From Auanema rhodensis (lineage: Eukaryota; Animalia; Nematoda): DNA of 64,000 bases. Below the pieces are notes generated by a model. It ran no database searches, was not told the origin of the DNA, and saw only the letters and a list, made by a program, of their open reading frames with translations. Location of the stretch: the NCBI GenBank assembly GCA_964057225.1, contig OZ059898.1, positions 4,464,001-4,528,000 on the forward strand, read 5' to 3'. Of the stretch, positions 7,399-19,749 are shown in pieces; position 1 is the first letter of the stretch; each line of letters begins with the position of its first letter. A program made the translations under genes and the position numbers.

Positions 7399-9295
7399 AA
7401 ACTTATGTGAAAGCCCGATGATAGGTTTCATCTAGATAGATCTTGGGAAACGTAGATGCTTTCTTGTTCATTCGTCCCAGATAACGAAACTTAAAACTTT
7501 CTAATTTAGTTGTTAAACGGCCTATATCTTATGCAACATAAAGAAACTTTTTCATATAATATATAAAATTAAGATAAAAGGTGAGATGAAGATATAAGCC
7601 TATACTATATATCTAATATATAAATTTAAGAATTTAAATAAAATTAATAGTTAATATTACATATTTATAATAAAGAAATGTATTATACATATATGTATAT
7701 GATTGAATATCCAGTTTCTATGATATACTTCACTTTCTATCCAATCTATCGAGTTGGGGTTAACGTTTATCAACCAAACAGCTAGATGAAGTTTGCTATC
7801 AAACATCTTGTAGTATGATCATCTATGACATCAAAGAATTTCGTTTCCGACACATCTTCTAAACAATAAAAAGATATTTTATAATTATATTATAAGAATT
7901 AAATAATTATAGGCACGAGAAGAAGGAAAATCTGTATCAGTACCTGTGATAGGAAAAGGAATGACAACTGATGGCTTAGCAATTGAAACAACTTCTTTTG
8001 CTCCTTTGCTACAAATTAATAATAATAATACAACAATTAATAATAATAATAATACTCATCATAATAATCATAATAATAATTCCACCTCGGCTCATGTTGT
8101 ACCTGCTTTAGCACCAGGTAATTCCTTTTTCGTTCAAATTATCAATCTTAATCTATATTTCTTATAGGATTATCAGCTGCTCCTCCATCAACATCTTTGC
8201 CTTTCTTTTCCGCAGTTGCTCCTCCAAATAGCTTGCCGACAGGATCGGATGAGCTTGGACGTCTCCGTGAACGTATTATGATCAATCAATTGATGAATCA
8301 ACATGCTTTCAATAATACATTCTCATGGCTTAATCAATTACCTAAGCCAATACCAAGTAAGATTAATAAATCTTTCTATATTAATATTGGATATATGTTT
8401 AAGCAACCCGCCCATTAGATTTATCTCAACATACTGATGCTGATGAGGATTTAGTTATCAATGTGGAAAAAGATATTGATAGTCCAAAGAGGGAAGATGA
8501 CGACGAAAAGGTTTTTACTATTTTCTAAATTAATTTATATTAATTTATTATTTTAGTTGAATATTTCTATCAGTGATTCTGAAGAACCAAAATCTGAAAG
8601 AACAAAAAGAACTGACAGTCCGTGTGAAAATGCCTGTTCATCTAGTACTGTTGGATCTTCACCCTCTCATACAGGCTCTTTACCATCACCTCTGAATGTG
8701 TTTAAAAAGTCTCGATCTTCACCAAGTGCTTTCCATCATCTGGTATGAACTTTCTTTGTTCTATTATATGAATTTTTGTCTTTTTTAAGAATGTAGATTC
8801 CCGGGCATTTATATCGGTGACATCTCCACACGTTTCACCCTCTGAAACGAATTCATCCATTTCTCCAGATGGTCAGGATAGGCCGGCTTGTTATGAATGT
8901 GCATTATATAAAACAAAACTTACAATGGCTGATAACAAATGTCGATATTTGGAAAGTCGAGCCAATACATTACAGGTTAGATTCTATTCGTATAATCATA
9001 TAATTATATTTTGTGATGTATAGGGTGAAACTGTTCGAGCTCAAACACAAACTGCTGCAGCAGAAACAGCTATTCGAGTTTTAGAGAATGATACACGTAA
9101 CTTACGGGAGCATACAGAAAGTATTCAAAGAAAGTTATTAGATTGTCAGGTATATCGTTTATATTAAATGATAAATATACAATATTAATATTACAGGAAC
9201 AAGCATTACGCTTTGTGCAATCTGATAAGACCGCAAATCAACAAGCTGTAGTCTTATTTTTGAATCAGTTAATACAATCAACGATTATTCGTTAA
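4927..9295 (+). CDS. Multi-exon transcription factor: CENP-B N-terminal/psq-type HTH, C2H2 zinc finger, C-terminal CxxC + coiled coil (possibly somi-1-like)
   Basis: Exon 4927-5572 encodes KKKPYKELTLEEKVQLIRLAEDNAGLSQAAIAERYKIAKSNVCRILQRK (HTH). A phase-1 splice to 7081-7196 gives GNETLRAHMYKQHQISRMFMCRCCNWAFPDKTSLHMHIQ (C2H2). Further exons from 7913 with GT-AG introns include CYECALYKTKL...LLDCQ coiled coil and end at TAA 9293-9295. An in-frame TAA at 4912 lies upstream of the ATG. The somi-1 similarity is recollection only. Confidence 0.85.
7322..7394. repeat. (GA)n microsatellite
   Basis: Perfect GA run of ~73 nt in an intron of the TF gene. Confidence 0.97.
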
Positions 9296-10074: not shown

Positions 10075-12534
10075 GAGGCCCGACTGAATTATACATATTT
10101 ATACATATATAATATTTAAAGGGTCTAATGTATATAGTATAATATTTTTTATTATTATTATTATTATTATTTATATACTTAATAATATATTTAATAGTAT
10201 ATAGTTGAAAACACTTATCACTACCACTTGTCTTTCGTTTTATCCTTGTAAATGATCATTTTAAAATAATATTATATGATAAAGACTTGTATGTAAATAC
10301 ATAGTATTCAATTGAATTTAATATAATTATTAGAATAACACCTTGTTACTAGTATAGATTCATATCAAAATTCTTTTTTTTTTGTTTCAAGACTCCCAAT
10401 TTGTCTTTCAAAACATTCTTTCTGTATAAATTTGAAGATGAAAATATTGTGATAAATAACCAACTGGCTTTCCCCAGGTGATTCAAATGATATTTCATTT
10501 AAACGAAAGAAGAGAAAAAGGTGAATAGTGACATATGCATAGCATGTTCGAAACTCCCTCCTCCTCCATTTTTGCCTTTTTCATCCTTTCTTCTCCTTCC
10601 TTTGATCCATCCTATCTTTGATTGTCATTTACATGGAGCTAATTTCTAACTTATTATACATATATGAGCCTTACTATATTGTGATGTGTAATATCTTTCA
10701 ATTTAATAAATAATTCTGGTCATTTTGTCTTTATAATATTTAAAAGAAAAAGTTTTTTTTTATAATATCAATATATAAAATGTTAAATGTATAATTCAAT
10801 AGGTAACATTGTTAAGATATAAAAAAAAATATTATTATTATTACATCTATCGAAATGTCATGCCGTATGTGATTGTTTCGTGTATACAAAGGATTTTAAA
10901 TCTCCTTTCGAATATATTGATCAAAAGATAGATATTGGTTTTTAATCCTACAAATAAATTGTTATCATACATTTATCTGTATTTATTGTAATATTTTTAA
11001 TTCTTGAACAACGTTTTAAAGTTCAAGTTCAATGTGTGGAGCTTTTTGCCATTTTGCTTTTCATTCATTTCTTTTAATCAAATGAATACAAATGTTATCT
11101 AAATATAAATTAGATCATTCGTCATTCTAAGATGTCAATTGTCTTTTAAATTTTGAATTTTTTAATGTTTATATCATTCATATATACGTTATATATATAT
11201 ATATTCTCATAGTATGAACATCGTGTGAAACTTCGCCATCTTCGTGTTCTTAAAGGGTGTATCTTTTTTTCTTCCAGATTTCTGTCCATGTATTGTCTAA
11301 AATACTACCGTATGGCATGGCTATTTTAATTCTCCCATAGTTTTTATAACATTGAATGTTACAAGAATGTTTTTTCTGAATACCTTTTTGAAAAAAAACA
11401 TTCAGTGTGCACTAGATTAGTCACATGTCTCCCTTTTATAGTATGAAAAGAAAATTAGTTACTGAACTATTCATGCTTTGACACCCAATGCACTGTTCAA
11501 TCTCGGTTCTTTCTTTTCTGGTAAATGCCTAATACAATTTTCTTTCTGCTCGTTTAACCAACATCATTTCGTAAAATATTAATATTTCTATTAGATTATC
11601 GTTATTAGCTTTGAGAATTACTTTGATAATATGAAACAATGTGAGAATGTTCTGTTATTAGTGTGAGTCTTCAATAACCTTTCATACTTCTTTCGTATTT
11701 ATCCTATTATAAAATTAATAAATATTCATTTATTGAAAATTCAAACCTCAACATTTAGTTTTAACTTAGAGCGTAGATATTTAAGATTTTAAAATTGAAA
11801 GGTGGTTGTTAACTAATAGAGCTAATTTTTTTTCTTTATTTATAATTAGTAAGAAACTAATTAATCTTTTTATTATTTTATAATTAATCTATTTTAGTTA
11901 AATACTATTCCTTTTACTACTACATCAATTTATAATATAATATTGATGTTAATGAAGAATTATATAAGAACATTTATTCTCATTTATTAAATTATCTTTT
12001 TACCTAAATTATGATGGCTTTTCAACATTTTATTTAACAAAAATATCTTTTATTGTTATATCTTTTAAATTTTGTAACATTATTCTTCTTTGTTTATTAA
12101 CATGAAGTTAAACATGTGAATAGTTTATAAATTATTTTTTAGATAATTTCGGGAAAGGTCATTATTGATTCGATGACATGAGCAATTTTATATTATATTC
12201 ACTTAAGAATTTAGTTGCAATAAAGTGCCATATCCTTGTCTCTCTCAAGTATAGCATATCCTTTTTTCTCCCATTTTCTCTTTTTGTTTTTTTATCTTTT
12301 TCTCTCTTTTTCTCTCTTTTACTATCTTTTTTCCTTTATATCTCTCTCTCTCTAATATTCTTTTTTTTTCTTTTTAATTTTTTTTTACTCAAATGTTGGT
12401 ACAATGTATTGCTTTAGTATACAAGTCATAATACTAACTAAAGTATTTTTCTTCAATATTCATTATTCTATAAATTGGTTTGTGCCTCATGTGTTATTAG
12501 TTTTTTCTCATAAAATCTATTTTTAGACATCAAT

Positions 12535-15500
12535 ATGCTTCGGCTGGAGGCTTTAACCTCTCGACAGAAAAAACTTACAAAAATCAATTGCAATCGAATT
12601 CGAAAGTAATTATAATCTTTTAATATTATTTATTATTATTATTAATATTATTATTAGGTGTCTTTTCAAACAAATCTATCGATGTGCAACCGATTATGAA
12701 TTCCAGAAAACTATGAACTATGAGGTGAGTAATGTTATCTAACAATTTTTTTAAATCAAATATTTGACATCACTTTTACAATTCAACATTCAATTTTCTT
12801 TTTAATTATATTTTGATAAGTATGTGCTTGTTTTGTTTTTAGAAATCATCAGATCTACCATATAGAATTATGCTTTGGAGAATACTGGTTAATCAACCAA
12901 TTATTTCAACAGTTTTAAGGATTGAAAGACCATATCCAAAGAAAGGCTCCATTCACGCCGCTCTACTATGTGGTACATACTACGGTGAGTTTGAAACTAT
13001 AGCGACGAATAGCCGTGCGCCTGAGGAGCGCCTTGTAGTGCATAGTTAATGGTTCGATTCCGCGATGTTTAATGCTGTATTCAACATGTGAATGACCGCA
13101 TAGGATCGGCGCGGGTAGATGAATTATCCAGTTGTGTTGTTCTTATATCTAAATGTTGATATAAATTAACATTCATAGCTAGATTACAAGTTTTATGGAA
13201 CTTTTCAATGTTTTGTTAATCTTCAGATTTTACTGTAAGACGTGAAATTGATATCCAAGGAATTGTTGAAGCAATAGGAATGCAAGAAAGCGAATTCAGT
13301 GCTATTGTTAAGATGATTACAACTAAAACTGGTTGTAGTTTGGGTGATTTGAATACAGTATGTTTGTTTTATTTTAAAAATTATTATATTTATTTTTAAG
13401 TTGAAAGGAGTATCTGATATTAAGTGCTATTTATCAATAACTGTAATTTATGGAAAGGTTATAAAGATGCGTTTATATTCAAATAATATAGATCTGATTT
13501 CAGATTTGTAATTGGGACCTGCCCCCTCCTTTCAAAAAAGCAGAACAGCCAGATGAGCAAGGTGTTTCGAGAAGAAAACGAGGAAGATCAAGCGTTACTG
13601 AGAAAAAAGTTCCTGTTAAACGTTCACCAAGAAGTAGAGCTGAGCATACACAACTGCCAGTGCATGAAATGTAAGTTAATCGATAAATTTATGTTTAAAA
13701 AATTTTTAATGAATATTAATGAATGCCAGTGGGAATAAAAGCTGAGCTCATTAAAACGTCTTGATGGTCAATCTTTCTTCTTTCCTTTTTTTTGTGAATA
13801 AGTGCATCTTTCAGCTCTGATTCAGCAAAACATACATATACTGAAAAACAGCCTGCTGAAAAGGAAGTAAGAAAATACACCAGAAGACAAAGTAATTCTA
13901 ATAAAAGTATAATCGGCTCACCAGGTATTGTATATGAAAAACAAAATTTAATCAGTATTATGTTAAGAATGTACAGCTACTATGTCTAAGAGATCTAGAA
14001 TGAGAAAGTCGACTAGTAATGTATCGACCAGATCAGCAAAAAAAGATTCATCAACATATATTGCTGCTGCTGTTAATAAAAGGAAAGGTGTAAGCAAAAT
14101 TGAAGAAAGATTGCTTCCAACAGAGTCTCATTCAAGTTTGTTTCAATTCTATTAAACTAAACATTGTTTTTTACTTCATTCAGCAGACGAAGTAAATAAT
14201 GATCAATCTATGAACTTTGACGAATCACATTTGGGAGATTCAGATACGGATAAATCAGATAAGGATTTGTTAGTTTAAAAATCATCTAAATAATTTTTTA
14301 TTTAATGCATTTAGTGTTGATGAGCGTGATTTCGAAATTACAATGTATAACAAACAAGTAATTTATATTTAGTAAAATTTAATTTTTAATAATATATTTT
14401 ATAGAACATTAAGGATTGCTTCCATGTTTGTAATGGACGTTTTATATTTTTCTGTATAACTGAAGGGCGTTATTCAATAGGAGAAATTATGAATTCTTAT
14501 TTAAAATTAAAGGTTTATATATGATAAATTATGAATATAATCATATTTTTGATTGCAGCATAATCGCTCTTATTATTTTTCATCTCTGTCTCGTCTTTGT
14601 GAAGATAATGATATAGCTTTTGCTGATTTAAACCTATTGGAACCACCATTTGTAGATATGAGCTATGAAGGTAGTACTTTGAATTTGAAATTATTAAATT
14701 ATGCTGTCATTAGGCTTACGAGTGTTTGCCTATAGGACATTTGGTTGGTCAATTGGTATAATAGTTCAATGTAATTTAAATAACAACTCGTTTAAGGTGA
14801 GATGTGAACCTTTTGATTATAAATAACAAATATTATAGATAATCTTTGATGACTCAAGTGAAGAATATATACGGTACAAGAATGGTAATAACGTAAATAT
14901 CTATCCTCTTGTCAAACAACCTATTTATGGGACTGGTGTATGCATTTTATATTATTATAATAAAACAAAAAAATATTATAAAATGAGAGTAATTTTAGTT
15001 AAATCTTAACACAAGCTTGATTGGTGCCAGTAAGAACATAAATCTAACTTACTCACAATCCATGCAAACTTCAGAGTCTGATACAATTGTCTTGAAGAAG
15101 GTTGGGCAATCGGTGTATTGCTGTTAATCACAACATTGTTTTAGGAGCTTGATGAACTTGAATCTAATCAGGATACTAATCAATCTCTCATACATACTTG
15201 TGAGAAACTTCAAATAGAAGAACCAGGTAGCTAATTGGTTCTCATACTAACAATTATTCAACGAAAAGCTTTAGAACTAAAGCCCCCTGAAAGCAATATA
15301 GTTGAATCGTTAACTATTATAAATAATGAAGTCATGGAAAATCACAATAGGAATCGATCAATTTTTTTGAACGTTGGTTAGTTAATAGCATATACTGTCT
15401 TATATATAATATATTTATCTTATTCGAACAGATCAAATGGCTATTGGATATCAACCAGTCTTCGAACATCCTCAACTAAGTATTCAAGAAAATATGCAAC

Positions 15501-16612
15501 CTGAGTGCAACAGTATTTTAATAAATGTAAGACCGGAATAAGATGAATGTTAAGATTTGAATATTGCACACGATACTAATTCATTGGGGGGACATGAACT
15601 TAACAGTCTTTTATCATTTCCGCAAGCTGCAGATACTGTTACAGGTGTTTTAAGATTGTAAACAATAACGCTTTAAATTGTAGTTCCTCCTGAAACAACT
15701 AACATTATGCATTTGGAAATTCCAACGGCTTCAACATCAGGAATCTCTCAGCCAGCTTTAAGTGCCCTAATATGTTAAGCTATTTCCTTCAGACTATGTA
15801 TTTTCAGATCACCTTGCTCAACAGCATCTGATTCCGACAAATGGTAATGTAACTAATGACAATAATTTAACTTTACTTCCAAATAATACATGTAGTTTAA
15901 TATTTATGTATGTGATTTATACCATTATTTTAATATTTTAAGATCTCTCTCCCATCCCTAATTATCTATGTGTCGATTTAACTCATTCTAATTCTCCAGT
16001 GGATTCTTCGATTTCAAGTTTGCAATTAACCATATTCGTGGCATATTAATTCTTCTAGATTTGATTCCTGTTCCAATGAATAGTGCGGAAATAATTCTTT
16101 CAACTGTATTGAATCCTTCGATTCTTCCTAGAATTATTGCTCCACGTGATTAAATATTCGTTTTTCTTGTTAAGCATATATTACAGGCAGTCATTCTACT
16201 TCTTTAAATACCCATGTATCTATTCATGATATTGCTTCCACTTCTACTACTGTTCCAAGTTCATCTTACCATGGTTCGTGTTAACTGTGAATCGGGATTA
16301 TTATTAAACATAATAAGTAAATATATAGTTGCAGCTAATTCCCTTTATGTTAACAAAGCTTCTATGCCTGGTGCTGATCTGACAAACTACAATATTTCTA
16401 GTCTTCCACAGCCTGTAAGCCATAAGAGGCTTTTCATTGATGAAGCATATTTAATACGTTGCGCCAATAACGTCTTTCAAAAATCAGTGTTATCAGACTA
16501 TTTAATAGCTACACCCGTAATAGGTTTGTCAAGTTTCTTTTCAATTATTATAATTAATACTTTAGCAAATATATCTGCTCCAACTCTTTGCCCATCTCAT
16601 TTTGAATACTGA
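12535..16612 (+). CDS. ~20-exon protein with a basic region, a SETDB1-like Tudor-type region and a low-complexity C-terminus (candidate N-terminal half of met-2)
   Basis: A phase-consistent chain of exons can be traced from ATG 12535 (MLRLEALTSRQKK) to TGA 16610-16612. Exons at 14404-14936 give ...EDNDIAFADLNLLEPPFVDMSYEGLRVFAYRTFGWSIGIIVQCNLNNNSFKIIFDDSSEEYI...IYPLV, matching the Tudor pattern G-x-RV-x-A...G-I...F-x-I-x-FDD. A few internal donors are ambiguous. Confidence 0.75.
13001..13140 (+). mobile_element. tRNA-like Pol III element (probable tRNA-derived SINE) inside an intron
   Basis: GC-richer island in intron 12985-13226. A-box-like TAGCCGTGCG at 13010 and a perfect B-box GGTTCGATTCC at 13051-13061, with tRNA-like spacing. 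No convincing cloverleaf. Confidence 0.5.
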
Positions 16613-17217
16613 TTTCCAGAACTACAAATAAACTCTCCTTTAATGTATAATCGGAATAGATCGAAAACATCTTTTTTGTTATATTGTTATTATTTTTTAT
16701 TTTTATTATTAATATTTTGCTGTAATAATTGAAATCAAGTATAACAATCAAATCACAAATTAAAGATATAAATAAATAAATGAATAAATATATATTATAT
16801 TATCAATTATCAATTATCGAGTAGAAAATATATATATATATATAATATATACCTAGCACTACCGCACTCTAATATTAAATATCTCACGATTACCACGAAA
16901 TGTATTTCGGCCAAAACTTTTTCGCATATATGGATCGTATAGTTGTAGACGTGAAATTTTATTTTTAGGTGAATTCATGCTTTTTGAAATTATATTTTAG
17001 TATTCACATTCTCTAGAGACCAATTCGAGCTTCAATAGTGACACTAAATTAATGTTAGACTAAAAATCAATACGCAACCACAAAATGAGTGATATTTAAA
17101 TCACATGTGCTTTAAATAGTTTATTTGAAATATTTGTGGTAAACTATAGATGACGTAGTCTTAATAGTGATTTACAGGTTCTTCTAAATAATATCAACGG
17201 CTGGCGAATCTTGTGAT

Positions 17218-19520
17218 ATGAATAGTATTGAAGAAATTATACTCACAGATGATGAGATGGAGGAACATATAGATCACAACATGAGTCAAGATGACATAAC
17301 TGTTGTTTTTGAATGTAATTTAGCTCCACGGGTTCAACAACATAATATGCCTAGTAATTCAGTAGCGTAAGATAGACGTTCTATAATGAATTGCTATAGT
17401 TTATAATAGAACCGATAGTAAGCAATACTCTGACGATATAATACCTGTTATTACGCTGTCCGACAGTGAAGATAACTTTTGTGAACAAGTACCGACCGTA
17501 TTTTTGGATGTAAGTCCTGAAACATTAGATAAAGAAGAGGAAATAATCAAGGTTTTTATTTTTCTACTGTAATGATAGCTCCATGCATATTAATCTATAG
17601 GAACTTGGAGTAAAAAAATTTAGTGAATTAGAACCTAACTCCAGAAAACTTTTAGAAGCCCGAATAAGAAGGGAAAAGTCGGAGGTAATTAATGCTTTGT
17701 ACAATGCTTTAATTGGTATTTAGGTAATTCTTGGACGAGTTGTGATCAACTATCCACATTATGAAAAGATATGGCATGAGTGCTCATCAAGTTGTCTTAT
17801 TGATAATTCGGACCCTATGAATGGCAGTTTTTCTGACGTTTCACCATTGCTTATTCCAATATCCACTGGATGGAAAAGAGAAGTTTTTAGCACAAGAGCT
17901 AAGAAACGAATTAATAAACATAATTAAGATCAGCATAATGGAGCATACAAGACTTCAAACTGTTCAAAAATATGTACTTTATACTTCTCCTTGTGGCAAA
18001 TCCTTTTATGATCATAAAGCTATTAGTGCCTATCTTAAAGTAAAATGCTTTTGTTTTGAGAACTTTGAATATCTCTGTAATTCAGAAGACAAACTGTAAT
18101 TTATCTCTTAGTAATTTCTGCTTTGATCAGATCGTAGATCCCTCCAAATTAGTTAAGGTTAATTACTTTTACTATGGAATATAAGCAAATTTTTACTAAC
18201 GAAGTTCTTACAGATTCCAGATAATCAAATTATGCATTCTGATATTAGTCATGGAAAGGAGCTTTTCCCTGTTACTGCCATTAATACAGTCGATATTACG
18301 GAAATTCCTAATGTTTGTTGACGTATACAACCGGTTTTATTTATTTGTTGTTTAGATACAATATATCACTACGAGACAATTTAGCCCTAATTTACAAGAG
18401 GTAATGGTGAGAAGTAGTGCGATGTGCTCTGGTTGCTCGTGTGAAGGTTAGCGAATCAAATATTATTAACCATGTAATTTAGTTTTTTTTTGAGACGATT
18501 GTCAAAATAGTTCAAAATGTGAATGTCAGCTACTTACTGTCGATAGTATAACGCAATTTTCAAAAAGAAAGACATCACTGAACGGGTTCGAAACTCTTCT
18601 TACACCTCACGATGACAATATTTGGTTTAGGTATACGAATCGTTTTTTAAAGCAAAAGATAATTACTGGGATATATGAATGTAACCAGAATTGCAAATGT
18701 AACACGAAACGGTGTCCAAATAGAGTGGCTCAGTTTCCTATTTCTTATCCATTATCAGTTGGTATATTGAATTTGTTCTGGATATGATTGCAAGTTATTT
18801 AGTTATTTCGGACGGGATTGAAAGGCTGGGGTGTCAGAACTTTGGTTGATATTCCGCAGGGAGCTTTTGTAATGAACTTTCTCGGACAGTTATATTCTCA
18901 AGATACCATTGACGAAGTTCCTAAATTTATTTATACAGCTGACATTGACTATATAGATACGGTTAAAATTAGTTGCTTAAAACGTATAAGTCTCATTATA
19001 TAAGTTTTAGATTGAAATGCAAAAAAAAATGGCCCAAGAACTTTTTGATAGACGAAGAAGATCCAAACAGTTTGCTTAAAAATAGTTCATTAATTGTCAT
19101 AAAATTTACAGTTTTAGTCTTCCTTGTAATGGTATAGATTGGTCATCTTGTTTTGATCATAATGAACATCTCTTTACAATTGATGCGTCCACTATGGGAA
19201 ATTTAGCTAGGTTTCTTTCTCCTCCTAAAAATAATTTATCTCATTAAGTTTAAGGTATATGAATCATTCATGCACTCCCAATGTATTTTCACAGTTTGTA
19301 TTTGTTGATACCCATGATATGCGTTTACCTTGGGTGTCTTTCTTTACTAATACAAAAATTAATGCTGGAGAGGTAACATAAATATATTGGCTTTAAAATA
19401 TAGTTTGTTTAGGAGCTAACTTGGGATTATGACTATAAAGTTAATTCTCAAAATGTACAATCGAGTTATTGCTACTGCGGGTCAACACAGTGTACTGAGC
19501 AAGGAGTTCTCCGGTTTTGA
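17218..19520 (+). CDS. met-2: SETDB1/MET-2-family H3K9 methyltransferase (MBD, pre-SET, bifurcated SET, post-SET), compact form
   Basis: Spliced translation gives [38 protein letters not shown] (MBD); [30 protein letters not shown] (pre-SET); [17 protein letters not shown] and [50 protein letters not shown] (SET with the SETDB1 signature VFVDTHD); CYCGSTQC (post-SET); stop TGA 19518-19520. Confidence 0.9.
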
Positions 19521-19749
19521 AAAAAATAGATGTATAATTAAATTTTAGGCTCACTAATTGTATTAATATCGTTTTACTTATATTTTTTCTGAAATTGATA
19601 TGCAGGTTTTATGTTTTACTCATCTTTTGGCATTTTAAAGGCATAATACAGTTCTACTCTTCCGTAAACATCGTAAATTCTATTCATGTGGTTTTCCCAT
19701 CAATATCTTATTCAAGTTCTTAGATTTCGATAAAGTTTCCTTATGACAG

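Follow-up and report, generated by a model that had tools for sequence, protein, structure and literature searches.

The met-2/SETDB1 locus of the nematode Auanema rhodensis is probably split into a Tudor-bearing reader gene and an MBD-SET writer gene

Introduction

Human SETDB1, MET-2 of Caenorhabditis elegans and Eggless of Drosophila are single-chain proteins in which a Tudor reader and an MBD-SET writer are covalently joined. SETDB1/MET-2 is the main writer of mono- and dimethylated lysine 9 of histone H3 (H3K9me1/2), and it silences repeats and germline genes. Here we describe the met-2/SETDB1 locus in a stretch of 64,000 nucleotides (nt) from Auanema rhodensis (contig OZ059898.1, positions 4,464,001 to 4,528,000; the whole stretch is called the window here, and its first letter is position 1). 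Two adjacent genes are found at this locus: gene U, which bears a Tudor-like region, and gene S, which encodes the writer.

What the Tudor module contributes to these enzymes is debated, and non-catalytic functions, the reading of H3K9me/K14ac and non-histone partners have all been discussed (PMC13108219). Vertebrate SETDB2 is a Tudor-less MBD-SET paralogue, and a short isoform of mouse SETDB1 consists of the Tudor domains only and still represses via HDAC1/2 and Sin3A/B (PMC13108219).

The order of MBD, pre-SET, bifurcated SET and post-SET in S is that of MET-2, SETDB1 and Eggless, the catalytic motifs are there, and S lies at the met-2 position. Exons 11–13 of U carry the motifs of the nematode second Tudor domain (TD2) and introns in common with met-2 genes. 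Unlike in the single-chain proteins, the reader and the writer are on two mRNAs and in two polypeptides, one Tudor is recognisable, the insert in the SET domain is about 50 amino acids (aa), and U has an unrelated N-terminal module (N-module) and a disordered tail of about 370 aa. Like vertebrate SETDB2, S has an MBD and a bifurcated SET without Tudors. However, SETDB2 is a product of duplication that exists alongside a full SETDB1, whereas S occupies the one met-2 locus known here and has the surviving Tudor part as its neighbour. U resembles the short mouse isoform as a reader-only product without MBD and SET. In mouse, the gene is intact and the isoform is one of its alternative transcripts, whereas U is the only form seen, is fixed at the gene level and is fused to another module. 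The architecture is thus supported as a variant of the well-known SETDB1/MET-2 family that is split into two genes. A literature search returned no paper describing fission of a SETDB1 gene, or gene fission via operons in nematodes.

Results

Layout of the locus

The window is AT-rich (32% GC), with introns of 40–60 nt. The main landmarks, including the untranslated regions (UTRs), are as follows.

12535–16612, plus strand: coding region of gene U, 25 exons, 831 aa
16566–16612, plus strand: last coding exon of U, closed by TGA 16610–16612; from contig pieces and bin depth in 4/4 runs
16613–17177, plus strand: 3'UTR of U (at least to ~16719–16739) and spacer, 24% GC; from contig ends and signals
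17176–17217, plus strand: acceptor AG 17176–77 of S, a probable trans-splice site, and 5'UTR with in-frame TAA 17185–87; from contig starts and sequence
17218–19520, plus strand: coding region of gene S, 15 exons, 555 aa, beginning at ATG 17218; all 14 introns are GT..AG joints in four runs, and the frame is open

The start codon of U is ATG 12535. From the N- to the C-terminus, the protein consists of the N-module, a basic and disordered stretch, the Tudor-like region and a long tail of about 370 aa that is rich in S, T and N and disordered. The phase-1 donor after 16523 reads TAATAG/gtttgt (slashes mark splice sites). AATAAA signals are found 3' of the U stop at 16627 and in a cluster at 16771–16788 (16771/16775/16783). 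Within the first exon of S there are two in-frame AGs, at 17247–48 (tactcacag) and at 17322–23 (gtaatttag). The positions that the initial annotation gave for the stop, the AATAAA signals, the acceptor, the TAA, the ATG, the donor and the AGs were all correct when checked against the sequence.

Two messages from the locus

RNA evidence came from four public runs of one study, in which about 45% of the words of 12500–19600 were present. The assembled contigs aligned to 13600–19560 of the window. The source record is silent on their RNA origin, and we take them to be RNA-derived because they are spliced with GT..AG joints. Each of the four runs yielded exactly two contigs, one of U and one of S, with zero base differences from the window. 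The U contigs measured 2732–2751 nt, carried the joint 16523>16566 in 4/4 runs and ended at ~16719–16739, so that the U contig reaches at least 107 nt past the stop into the 3'UTR. The S contigs measured 1802–1866 nt and started at 17179, 17198, 17198 and 17227, with an end near 19663. One of them begins 2 nt after AG 17176–77, and none of the four extends upstream across this AG. Contig depth at 16784–17178 was zero in all four runs.

The exon chain of U was chosen among 2420 frame-compatible chains by joint coordinates and per-bin depth. The chosen chain matches every depth bin within a few bases (1–3 nt), and exons 5–25 fit both the contig joints and the per-bin depth. Upstream of 13968, the contig holds 801 nt, compared with a modelled 688 nt of coding sequence plus ~113 nt of 5'UTR.

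The contigs contained 34 joints in total (15 of them listed individually), which equals the 20 introns of U plus the 14 introns of S. There is therefore no U-to-S joint in these assemblies. The junctions 16523>17249 and 16523>17324, which would fuse U to S, were absent from the 34 contig joints in the four runs. Two separate spliced mRNAs, U and S, each with a complete open reading frame (ORF), are present in all four runs. This bears out two proposals of the initial annotation, namely that U closes with its own terminal exon and that S has its own acceptor. The initial annotation had also raised the possibility of a full-length fusion mRNA. The phases do match and the AGs are in frame, but the junction is missing among the 34 joints, and a rejoining of U and S by splicing is unsupported.

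The writer gene S

The domains of S are given below.

17850–18039, plus strand: MBD (end of exon S4 with GWKRE, and exon S5); Pfam MBD E 1.3e-3, partial ORF
18356–18757, plus strand: pre-SET zinc cluster (exons S8–S10); Pfam PF05033 E 6.6e-9 on 18494–18784
18803–19372, plus strand: bifurcated SET, with the N part at 18803–18961 (GWGVRT) and the C part at 19255–19372 (NHSCTPN)
19413–19520, plus strand: end of SET (ELTWDY) and post-SET, with stop TGA 19518–19520; read from the translation

S fits the SETDB1/MET-2 family on its pre-SET, its bifurcated SET, an MBD that is N-terminal of the pre-SET, and its post-SET. The Pfam matches and the motifs agree with the earlier reading of the downstream unit as holding these domains only. 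The Pfam score of the MBD is below the gathering score because a single ORF holds only part of the domain; the region aligns with the MBD stretches of four relatives (P0001, P0004, P0007 and P0018). The two SET halves match Pfam with E 0.022 and 7e-7 at profile positions 1–35 and 62–98, and the insert between them (exons S12–S13) is very short. The translation also carries YMNHSCTPN, and the CxCxxxxC motif of the post-SET is CYCGSTQC at 19470–19493. Since GWGVRT, NHSCTPN, ELTWDY and CYCGSTQC are all present, the catalytic motifs appear intact, and nothing suggests a dead enzyme. The polypeptide has no tandem Tudors: its reading frame opens at ATG 17218, 3' of an in-frame TAA, and its contigs, which begin at or after 17179, have no junction with U.

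When 1.84 billion representatives were searched with the pre-SET ORF, 132 family members were found. The closest was a protein of Auanema sp. JU1783 (P0001), and the exons of S resemble its residues 22–523 exon for exon. Identity between the two is 71–77% in the SET exons and 68% at 19413–19520, where SET ends and the post-SET lies. A word-based protein search with the S part of the Auanema sp. JU1783 protein found no closer relatives and did not return the window's own protein.

We also observed a SUMO-interaction-like motif in exon 2 of S (17438–17473), which is kept in Auanema sp. JU1783 (IPLITLDSDDE). Similar motifs occur in other SETDB1 proteins at other positions.

A Tudor-like region in gene U

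The Tudor-like region of U is spread over three exons.

14559–14937, plus strand: Tudor-like exons 11–13 (14559–14670, 14714–14796 and 14839–14937), TD2-like, Pfam Tudor_5 region

With matrices seeded on the SETDB1 proteins of Mesorhabditis, Pristionchus and thrips, exon 13 was the best or second-best match in the 64-kb window. The matches that involved exon 13 or exons 12–13 had E 0.2–0.4 over the whole window. When the search space was U only, the Tudor matches had E 0.004–0.024, the value of 0.004 being against Mesorhabditis SETDB1. A profile of the nematode TD2 region alone placed exon 13 first in the window, with exons 11, 12 and 13 collinear. The chain of the three exons scored 11.4 bits, which was equalled by 1 of 3000 shuffles (P 3e-4). 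When the three exons were given to MAFFT separately, they aligned collinearly on the DIA, GLRVxA, WxxGxI and FFDDxxxY(V/I) motifs of eight nematode proteins. The motifs supporting the match in U are DIA, GLRVxA and IIFDDxxEY, in keeping with the TD2 signature FLIFFDDGY..YV preceded by G[TL]RV.A. The matched Mesorhabditis region is itself a Pfam Tudor_5 domain (E 8.6e-9) and matches the solved Tudor structures of human SETDB1 with E 1.6e-6.

The intron positions point in the same direction. A phase-0 intron before IIFDD in U (SFK/IIFDD) is common to three full-length met-2 genes, where its counterparts are QFL/IFFDD in Mesorhabditis, RFL/VFMDD in C. auriculariae and EYA/VAFDD in Pristionchus. 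A phase-1 intron within the Gly codon of G/LRV is common to U and C. auriculariae.

Other searches were negative. A sequence search of the PDB with single Tudor exons of U gave an insignificant SH3 match or nothing, and exon-wise blastp of U gave mostly noise. A broad jackhmmer profile of the SETDB1 Tudors (54 family members), run on six-frame segments, left exon 13 at noise level (E 3.6).

Because the profile match is first in the window, the chain is collinear and the introns are common, we conclude that exons 11–13 of U correspond to the TD2 of met-2. The third Tudor may be lost or unrecognisable, and the first and third Tudor domains (TD1 and TD3) may each have been lost or have diverged too far. 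The Tudor-like segment of the initial annotation is thus real, as judged by the chain, the introns and the motifs, but it is weaker than was implied, and a single TD2-like Tudor is demonstrable.

In the annotated model of the C. auriculariae met-2 homologue (locus L003, 11943–12211), the G/LRV intron has an apparent GC donor (TATATAG/gcaaat).

The locus in related nematodes

A TOP2-like gene lies directly 3' of S, from about 19916 (AG 19866–67, ATG 19916–18), with a spacing of ~200 nt from S. The same order of met-2 followed by a TOP2-like gene is found in four other nematodes, C. brenneri (with a bona fide MET-2), Pristionchus mayeri, C. auriculariae and Auanema sp. JU1783, and S is therefore at the ancestral met-2 locus. 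The public models P0001, P0007 and P0008 (from Auanema sp. JU1783, Heterorhabditis and C. auriculariae) join the SET gene to the TOP2-like gene. This is an annotation fusion, and since several models fuse these neighbours, the public gene models of the clade are unreliable here.

Full-length Tudor-MBD-SET proteins were found in Mesorhabditis, Caenorhabditis, Pristionchus, Heterorhabditis and Haemonchus, and the full-length architecture in these five genera makes a single met-2 gene the ancestral state. The nearest available relative, Auanema sp. JU1783, already has a Tudor-less MBD-SET gene model, which the initial annotation had missed. The window and the Auanema sp. JU1783 locus (L001) are collinear over the flanking genes too. 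In Auanema sp. JU1783, an in-frame stop precedes the MBD-SET model, whose start lies ~20 aa ahead of the exon that corresponds to exon 2 of S. No Tudor was found in the 10 kb upstream of that gene, and no Tudor-coding exon was detected in L001 3879–10000. A Tudor-profile match at L001 6573–6626 was dismissed because the sequence there is non-coding and of low complexity.

A Tudor-less writer is probably common to A. rhodensis and Auanema sp. JU1783. Because the gene model at the Auanema sp. JU1783 locus is Tudor-less too, the split is probably older than A. rhodensis. Either the reader half was kept in A. rhodensis and lost in Auanema sp. JU1783, or it was attached in A. rhodensis to a once-independent upstream gene.

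The N-terminal module of gene U

12535–13560, plus strand: N-module of U (exons 1–4 and the start of exon 5), first ~150 residues, ending in ICNWDLPPPF; unlike SETDB1

Exon 4 of U matches 8725–8844 of the Auanema sp. JU1783 locus (tblastn E 9e-8, 40% identity; reciprocal E 1e-7), and the start of exon 5 (WDLPPPF) aligns to the same locus from 8993. In Auanema sp. JU1783, the homologue of the N-module is a separate gene model of 226 aa (L001 7949–9109) directly upstream of the MBD-SET gene. This protein ends 38 aa after the WDL motif (stop at L001 9107–09). No Pfam family was found for the N-module, either in the U exons or in the 226-aa gene, and the module was found neither in 135 SETDB1-family proteins nor at the loci of Mesorhabditis and C. 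auriculariae. On these comparisons, the N-module is lineage-specific. The initial annotation missed that the first ~150 aa of U are not SETDB1-like and match a separate Auanema sp. JU1783 gene.

Reading through the donor of exon 5 into intron 5 (13671–13814) meets a TAA at 13672–74, and an AATAAA follows at 13734–39. Such a read-through would give a protein that stops just past the N-module, near the end of the 226-aa homologue. The stop may mark where an older gene once ended, or may serve an alternative short isoform, and it decides neither direction of change. No RNA evidence for a short isoform was seen in the contigs.

Intron 3 of U (12990–13140) contains a GC-rich island (46% GC) that is unique and has a tRNA T-arm-like GGTTCGATTCC motif. 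A tRNA reading of this island was rejected, as ARAGORN, Rfam, the fold z-score and self-BLAST all came back empty.

Discussion

We consider it probable that the ancestral single met-2/SETDB1 gene is represented in A. rhodensis by two adjacent co-oriented genes, the reader-bearing U and the writer S. The initial annotation had offered gene fission of reader from writer as one of its explanations, and this is supported by the two mRNAs, by the position of S at the ancestral locus and by the MET-2-type Tudor of U with its common introns. The ancestral met-2 would have encoded the Tudors, a linker, MBD, pre-SET and SET domains and a post-SET in one gene, and the break would lie in the old Tudor-to-MBD linker. 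On its 5' side, U would now combine the lineage-specific N-module, the basic disordered stretch, the TD2-like Tudor and the disordered tail, and would end in a stop and poly(A) signals of its own. The 5' end of the S mRNA would be made at AG 17176–77, probably by spliced-leader trans-splicing, since one contig starts 2 nt after this AG and none crosses it. Nematodes cut out downstream genes by trans-splicing. As this frees the downstream gene, fission would need little beyond a stop and poly(A) site and an acceptor.

U and S, and possibly the TOP2-like gene too, may be cistrons of one precursor, with spacings of ~400 nt and ~200 nt. As in nematode operons, U and S are co-oriented, with ~400 nt from the U poly(A) signals to the S acceptor, and S begins after an AG. 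The spacing in C. elegans operons is typically ~100 nt. The U–S spacing is longer than that, and no spliced leader, SL2 or polycistronic RNA was observed in the contigs. An internal promoter for S is equally possible. With no reader covalently attached, the S protein would act on H3K9 as a methyltransferase of the SETDB2 kind, and U would be a free Tudor protein, serving as reader or scaffold and perhaps still associating with S.

Several points weigh against this reading. The domain searches of U and S were made per exon or per ORF piece, so the Tudor fold of U is putative. Over the whole window, the Tudor exons reach E 0.06–0.7 only, single U exons have zero matches in Pfam, and with exon-wise nematode profiles compared to shuffles, TD1 (P 0.23) and TD3 with YRGSxR (P 0.12) were undetected. 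Exons 1–4 of U were placed by ORF and GT/AG logic only. The RNA consists of contigs from one study, which hide rare isoforms and are blind to 5' ends, spliced leaders and poly(A) sites. The Auanema sp. JU1783 models are annotation without RNA support, and exon 1 of S gave no significant alignment with the first exon there; we do not claim a conserved start codon for this reason. Lastly, the evidence on met-2 copies is confined to this locus.

The rival explanations differ mainly in what they make of U. It could be an unrelated neighbour with a Tudor likeness by chance, next to a met-2 gene that lost its N-terminal half and became SETDB2-like. The match of the N-module to a stand-alone 226-aa gene, the zero Pfam matches on U exons, the undetected TD1 and TD3 and the lack of a Tudor at the Auanema sp. 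JU1783 locus would all fit. However, the collinear chain has P 3e-4, and the best Tudor match of the window falls exactly on these exons. The region also has the nematode-specific GLRV motif and two intron positions and phases in common with full-length met-2 genes. Chance likeness is unlikely because of these introns, and we regard an unrelated neighbour as quite improbable. A single locus with three products, in which full-length MET-2 is made by skipping the terminal exon of U (from the 16523 donor to AG 17247–48 or 17322–23), is also improbable. The 34 joints of the four runs include no such junction, no contig lies over 16784–17178, and in every run the U contig goes on through the terminal exon to the 3'UTR. 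Against this, the phases match, both AGs are in an acceptable acceptor context, and contigs drop rare variants. That U and S are partial paralogues of a complete met-2 elsewhere in the genome seems very improbable. Their order and orientation are the ancestral ones, and the TOP2-like gene comes directly after them, as it comes after met-2 in four other nematodes; Auanema sp. JU1783 has the same arrangement in collinear synteny.

A further explanation is compatible with the split. The N-module may once have been an independent upstream gene; by splicing past its former stop, it would have acquired the 5' half of met-2, and fusion and fission would have occurred together. The Auanema sp. JU1783 homologue ends 38 aa after the WDL motif, TAA 13672–74 and AATAAA 13734–39 resemble a relic gene end at the same place, and no full-length SETDB1 protein that was tested has the module, nor do the loci of Mesorhabditis and C. 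auriculariae. However, the reverse order is equally possible, with an ancestral long U that intron read-through and deletion cut short in Auanema sp. JU1783. The N-termini of MET-2 evolve fast, and a diverged N-module could escape detection; moreover, the comparison covers two species of the clade only. We lean somewhat against capture, while giving it an appreciable chance.

If the fission of met-2 into U and S is correct, the locus would be a clean example of a nematode gene split within a disordered linker. More doubtfully, A. rhodensis may have a natural two-gene SETDB1, with the reader fused to a clade-specific module and the writer separate, perhaps as neighbouring cistrons, the two acting as a non-covalent two-subunit enzyme or independently, and with the reader discarded in Auanema sp. 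JU1783. On that reading, H3K9 methylation in these nematodes could do without the Tudor module of MET-2 or could use a replacement for it. Whether the U and S proteins still bind each other, whether they have common targets and what the loss of each would do are the questions that this arrangement raises. A reader and a writer that are physically separated would amount to a natural separation-of-function allele of MET-2, in a clade in which the relative Auanema sp. JU1783 has apparently lost the reader at the locus.

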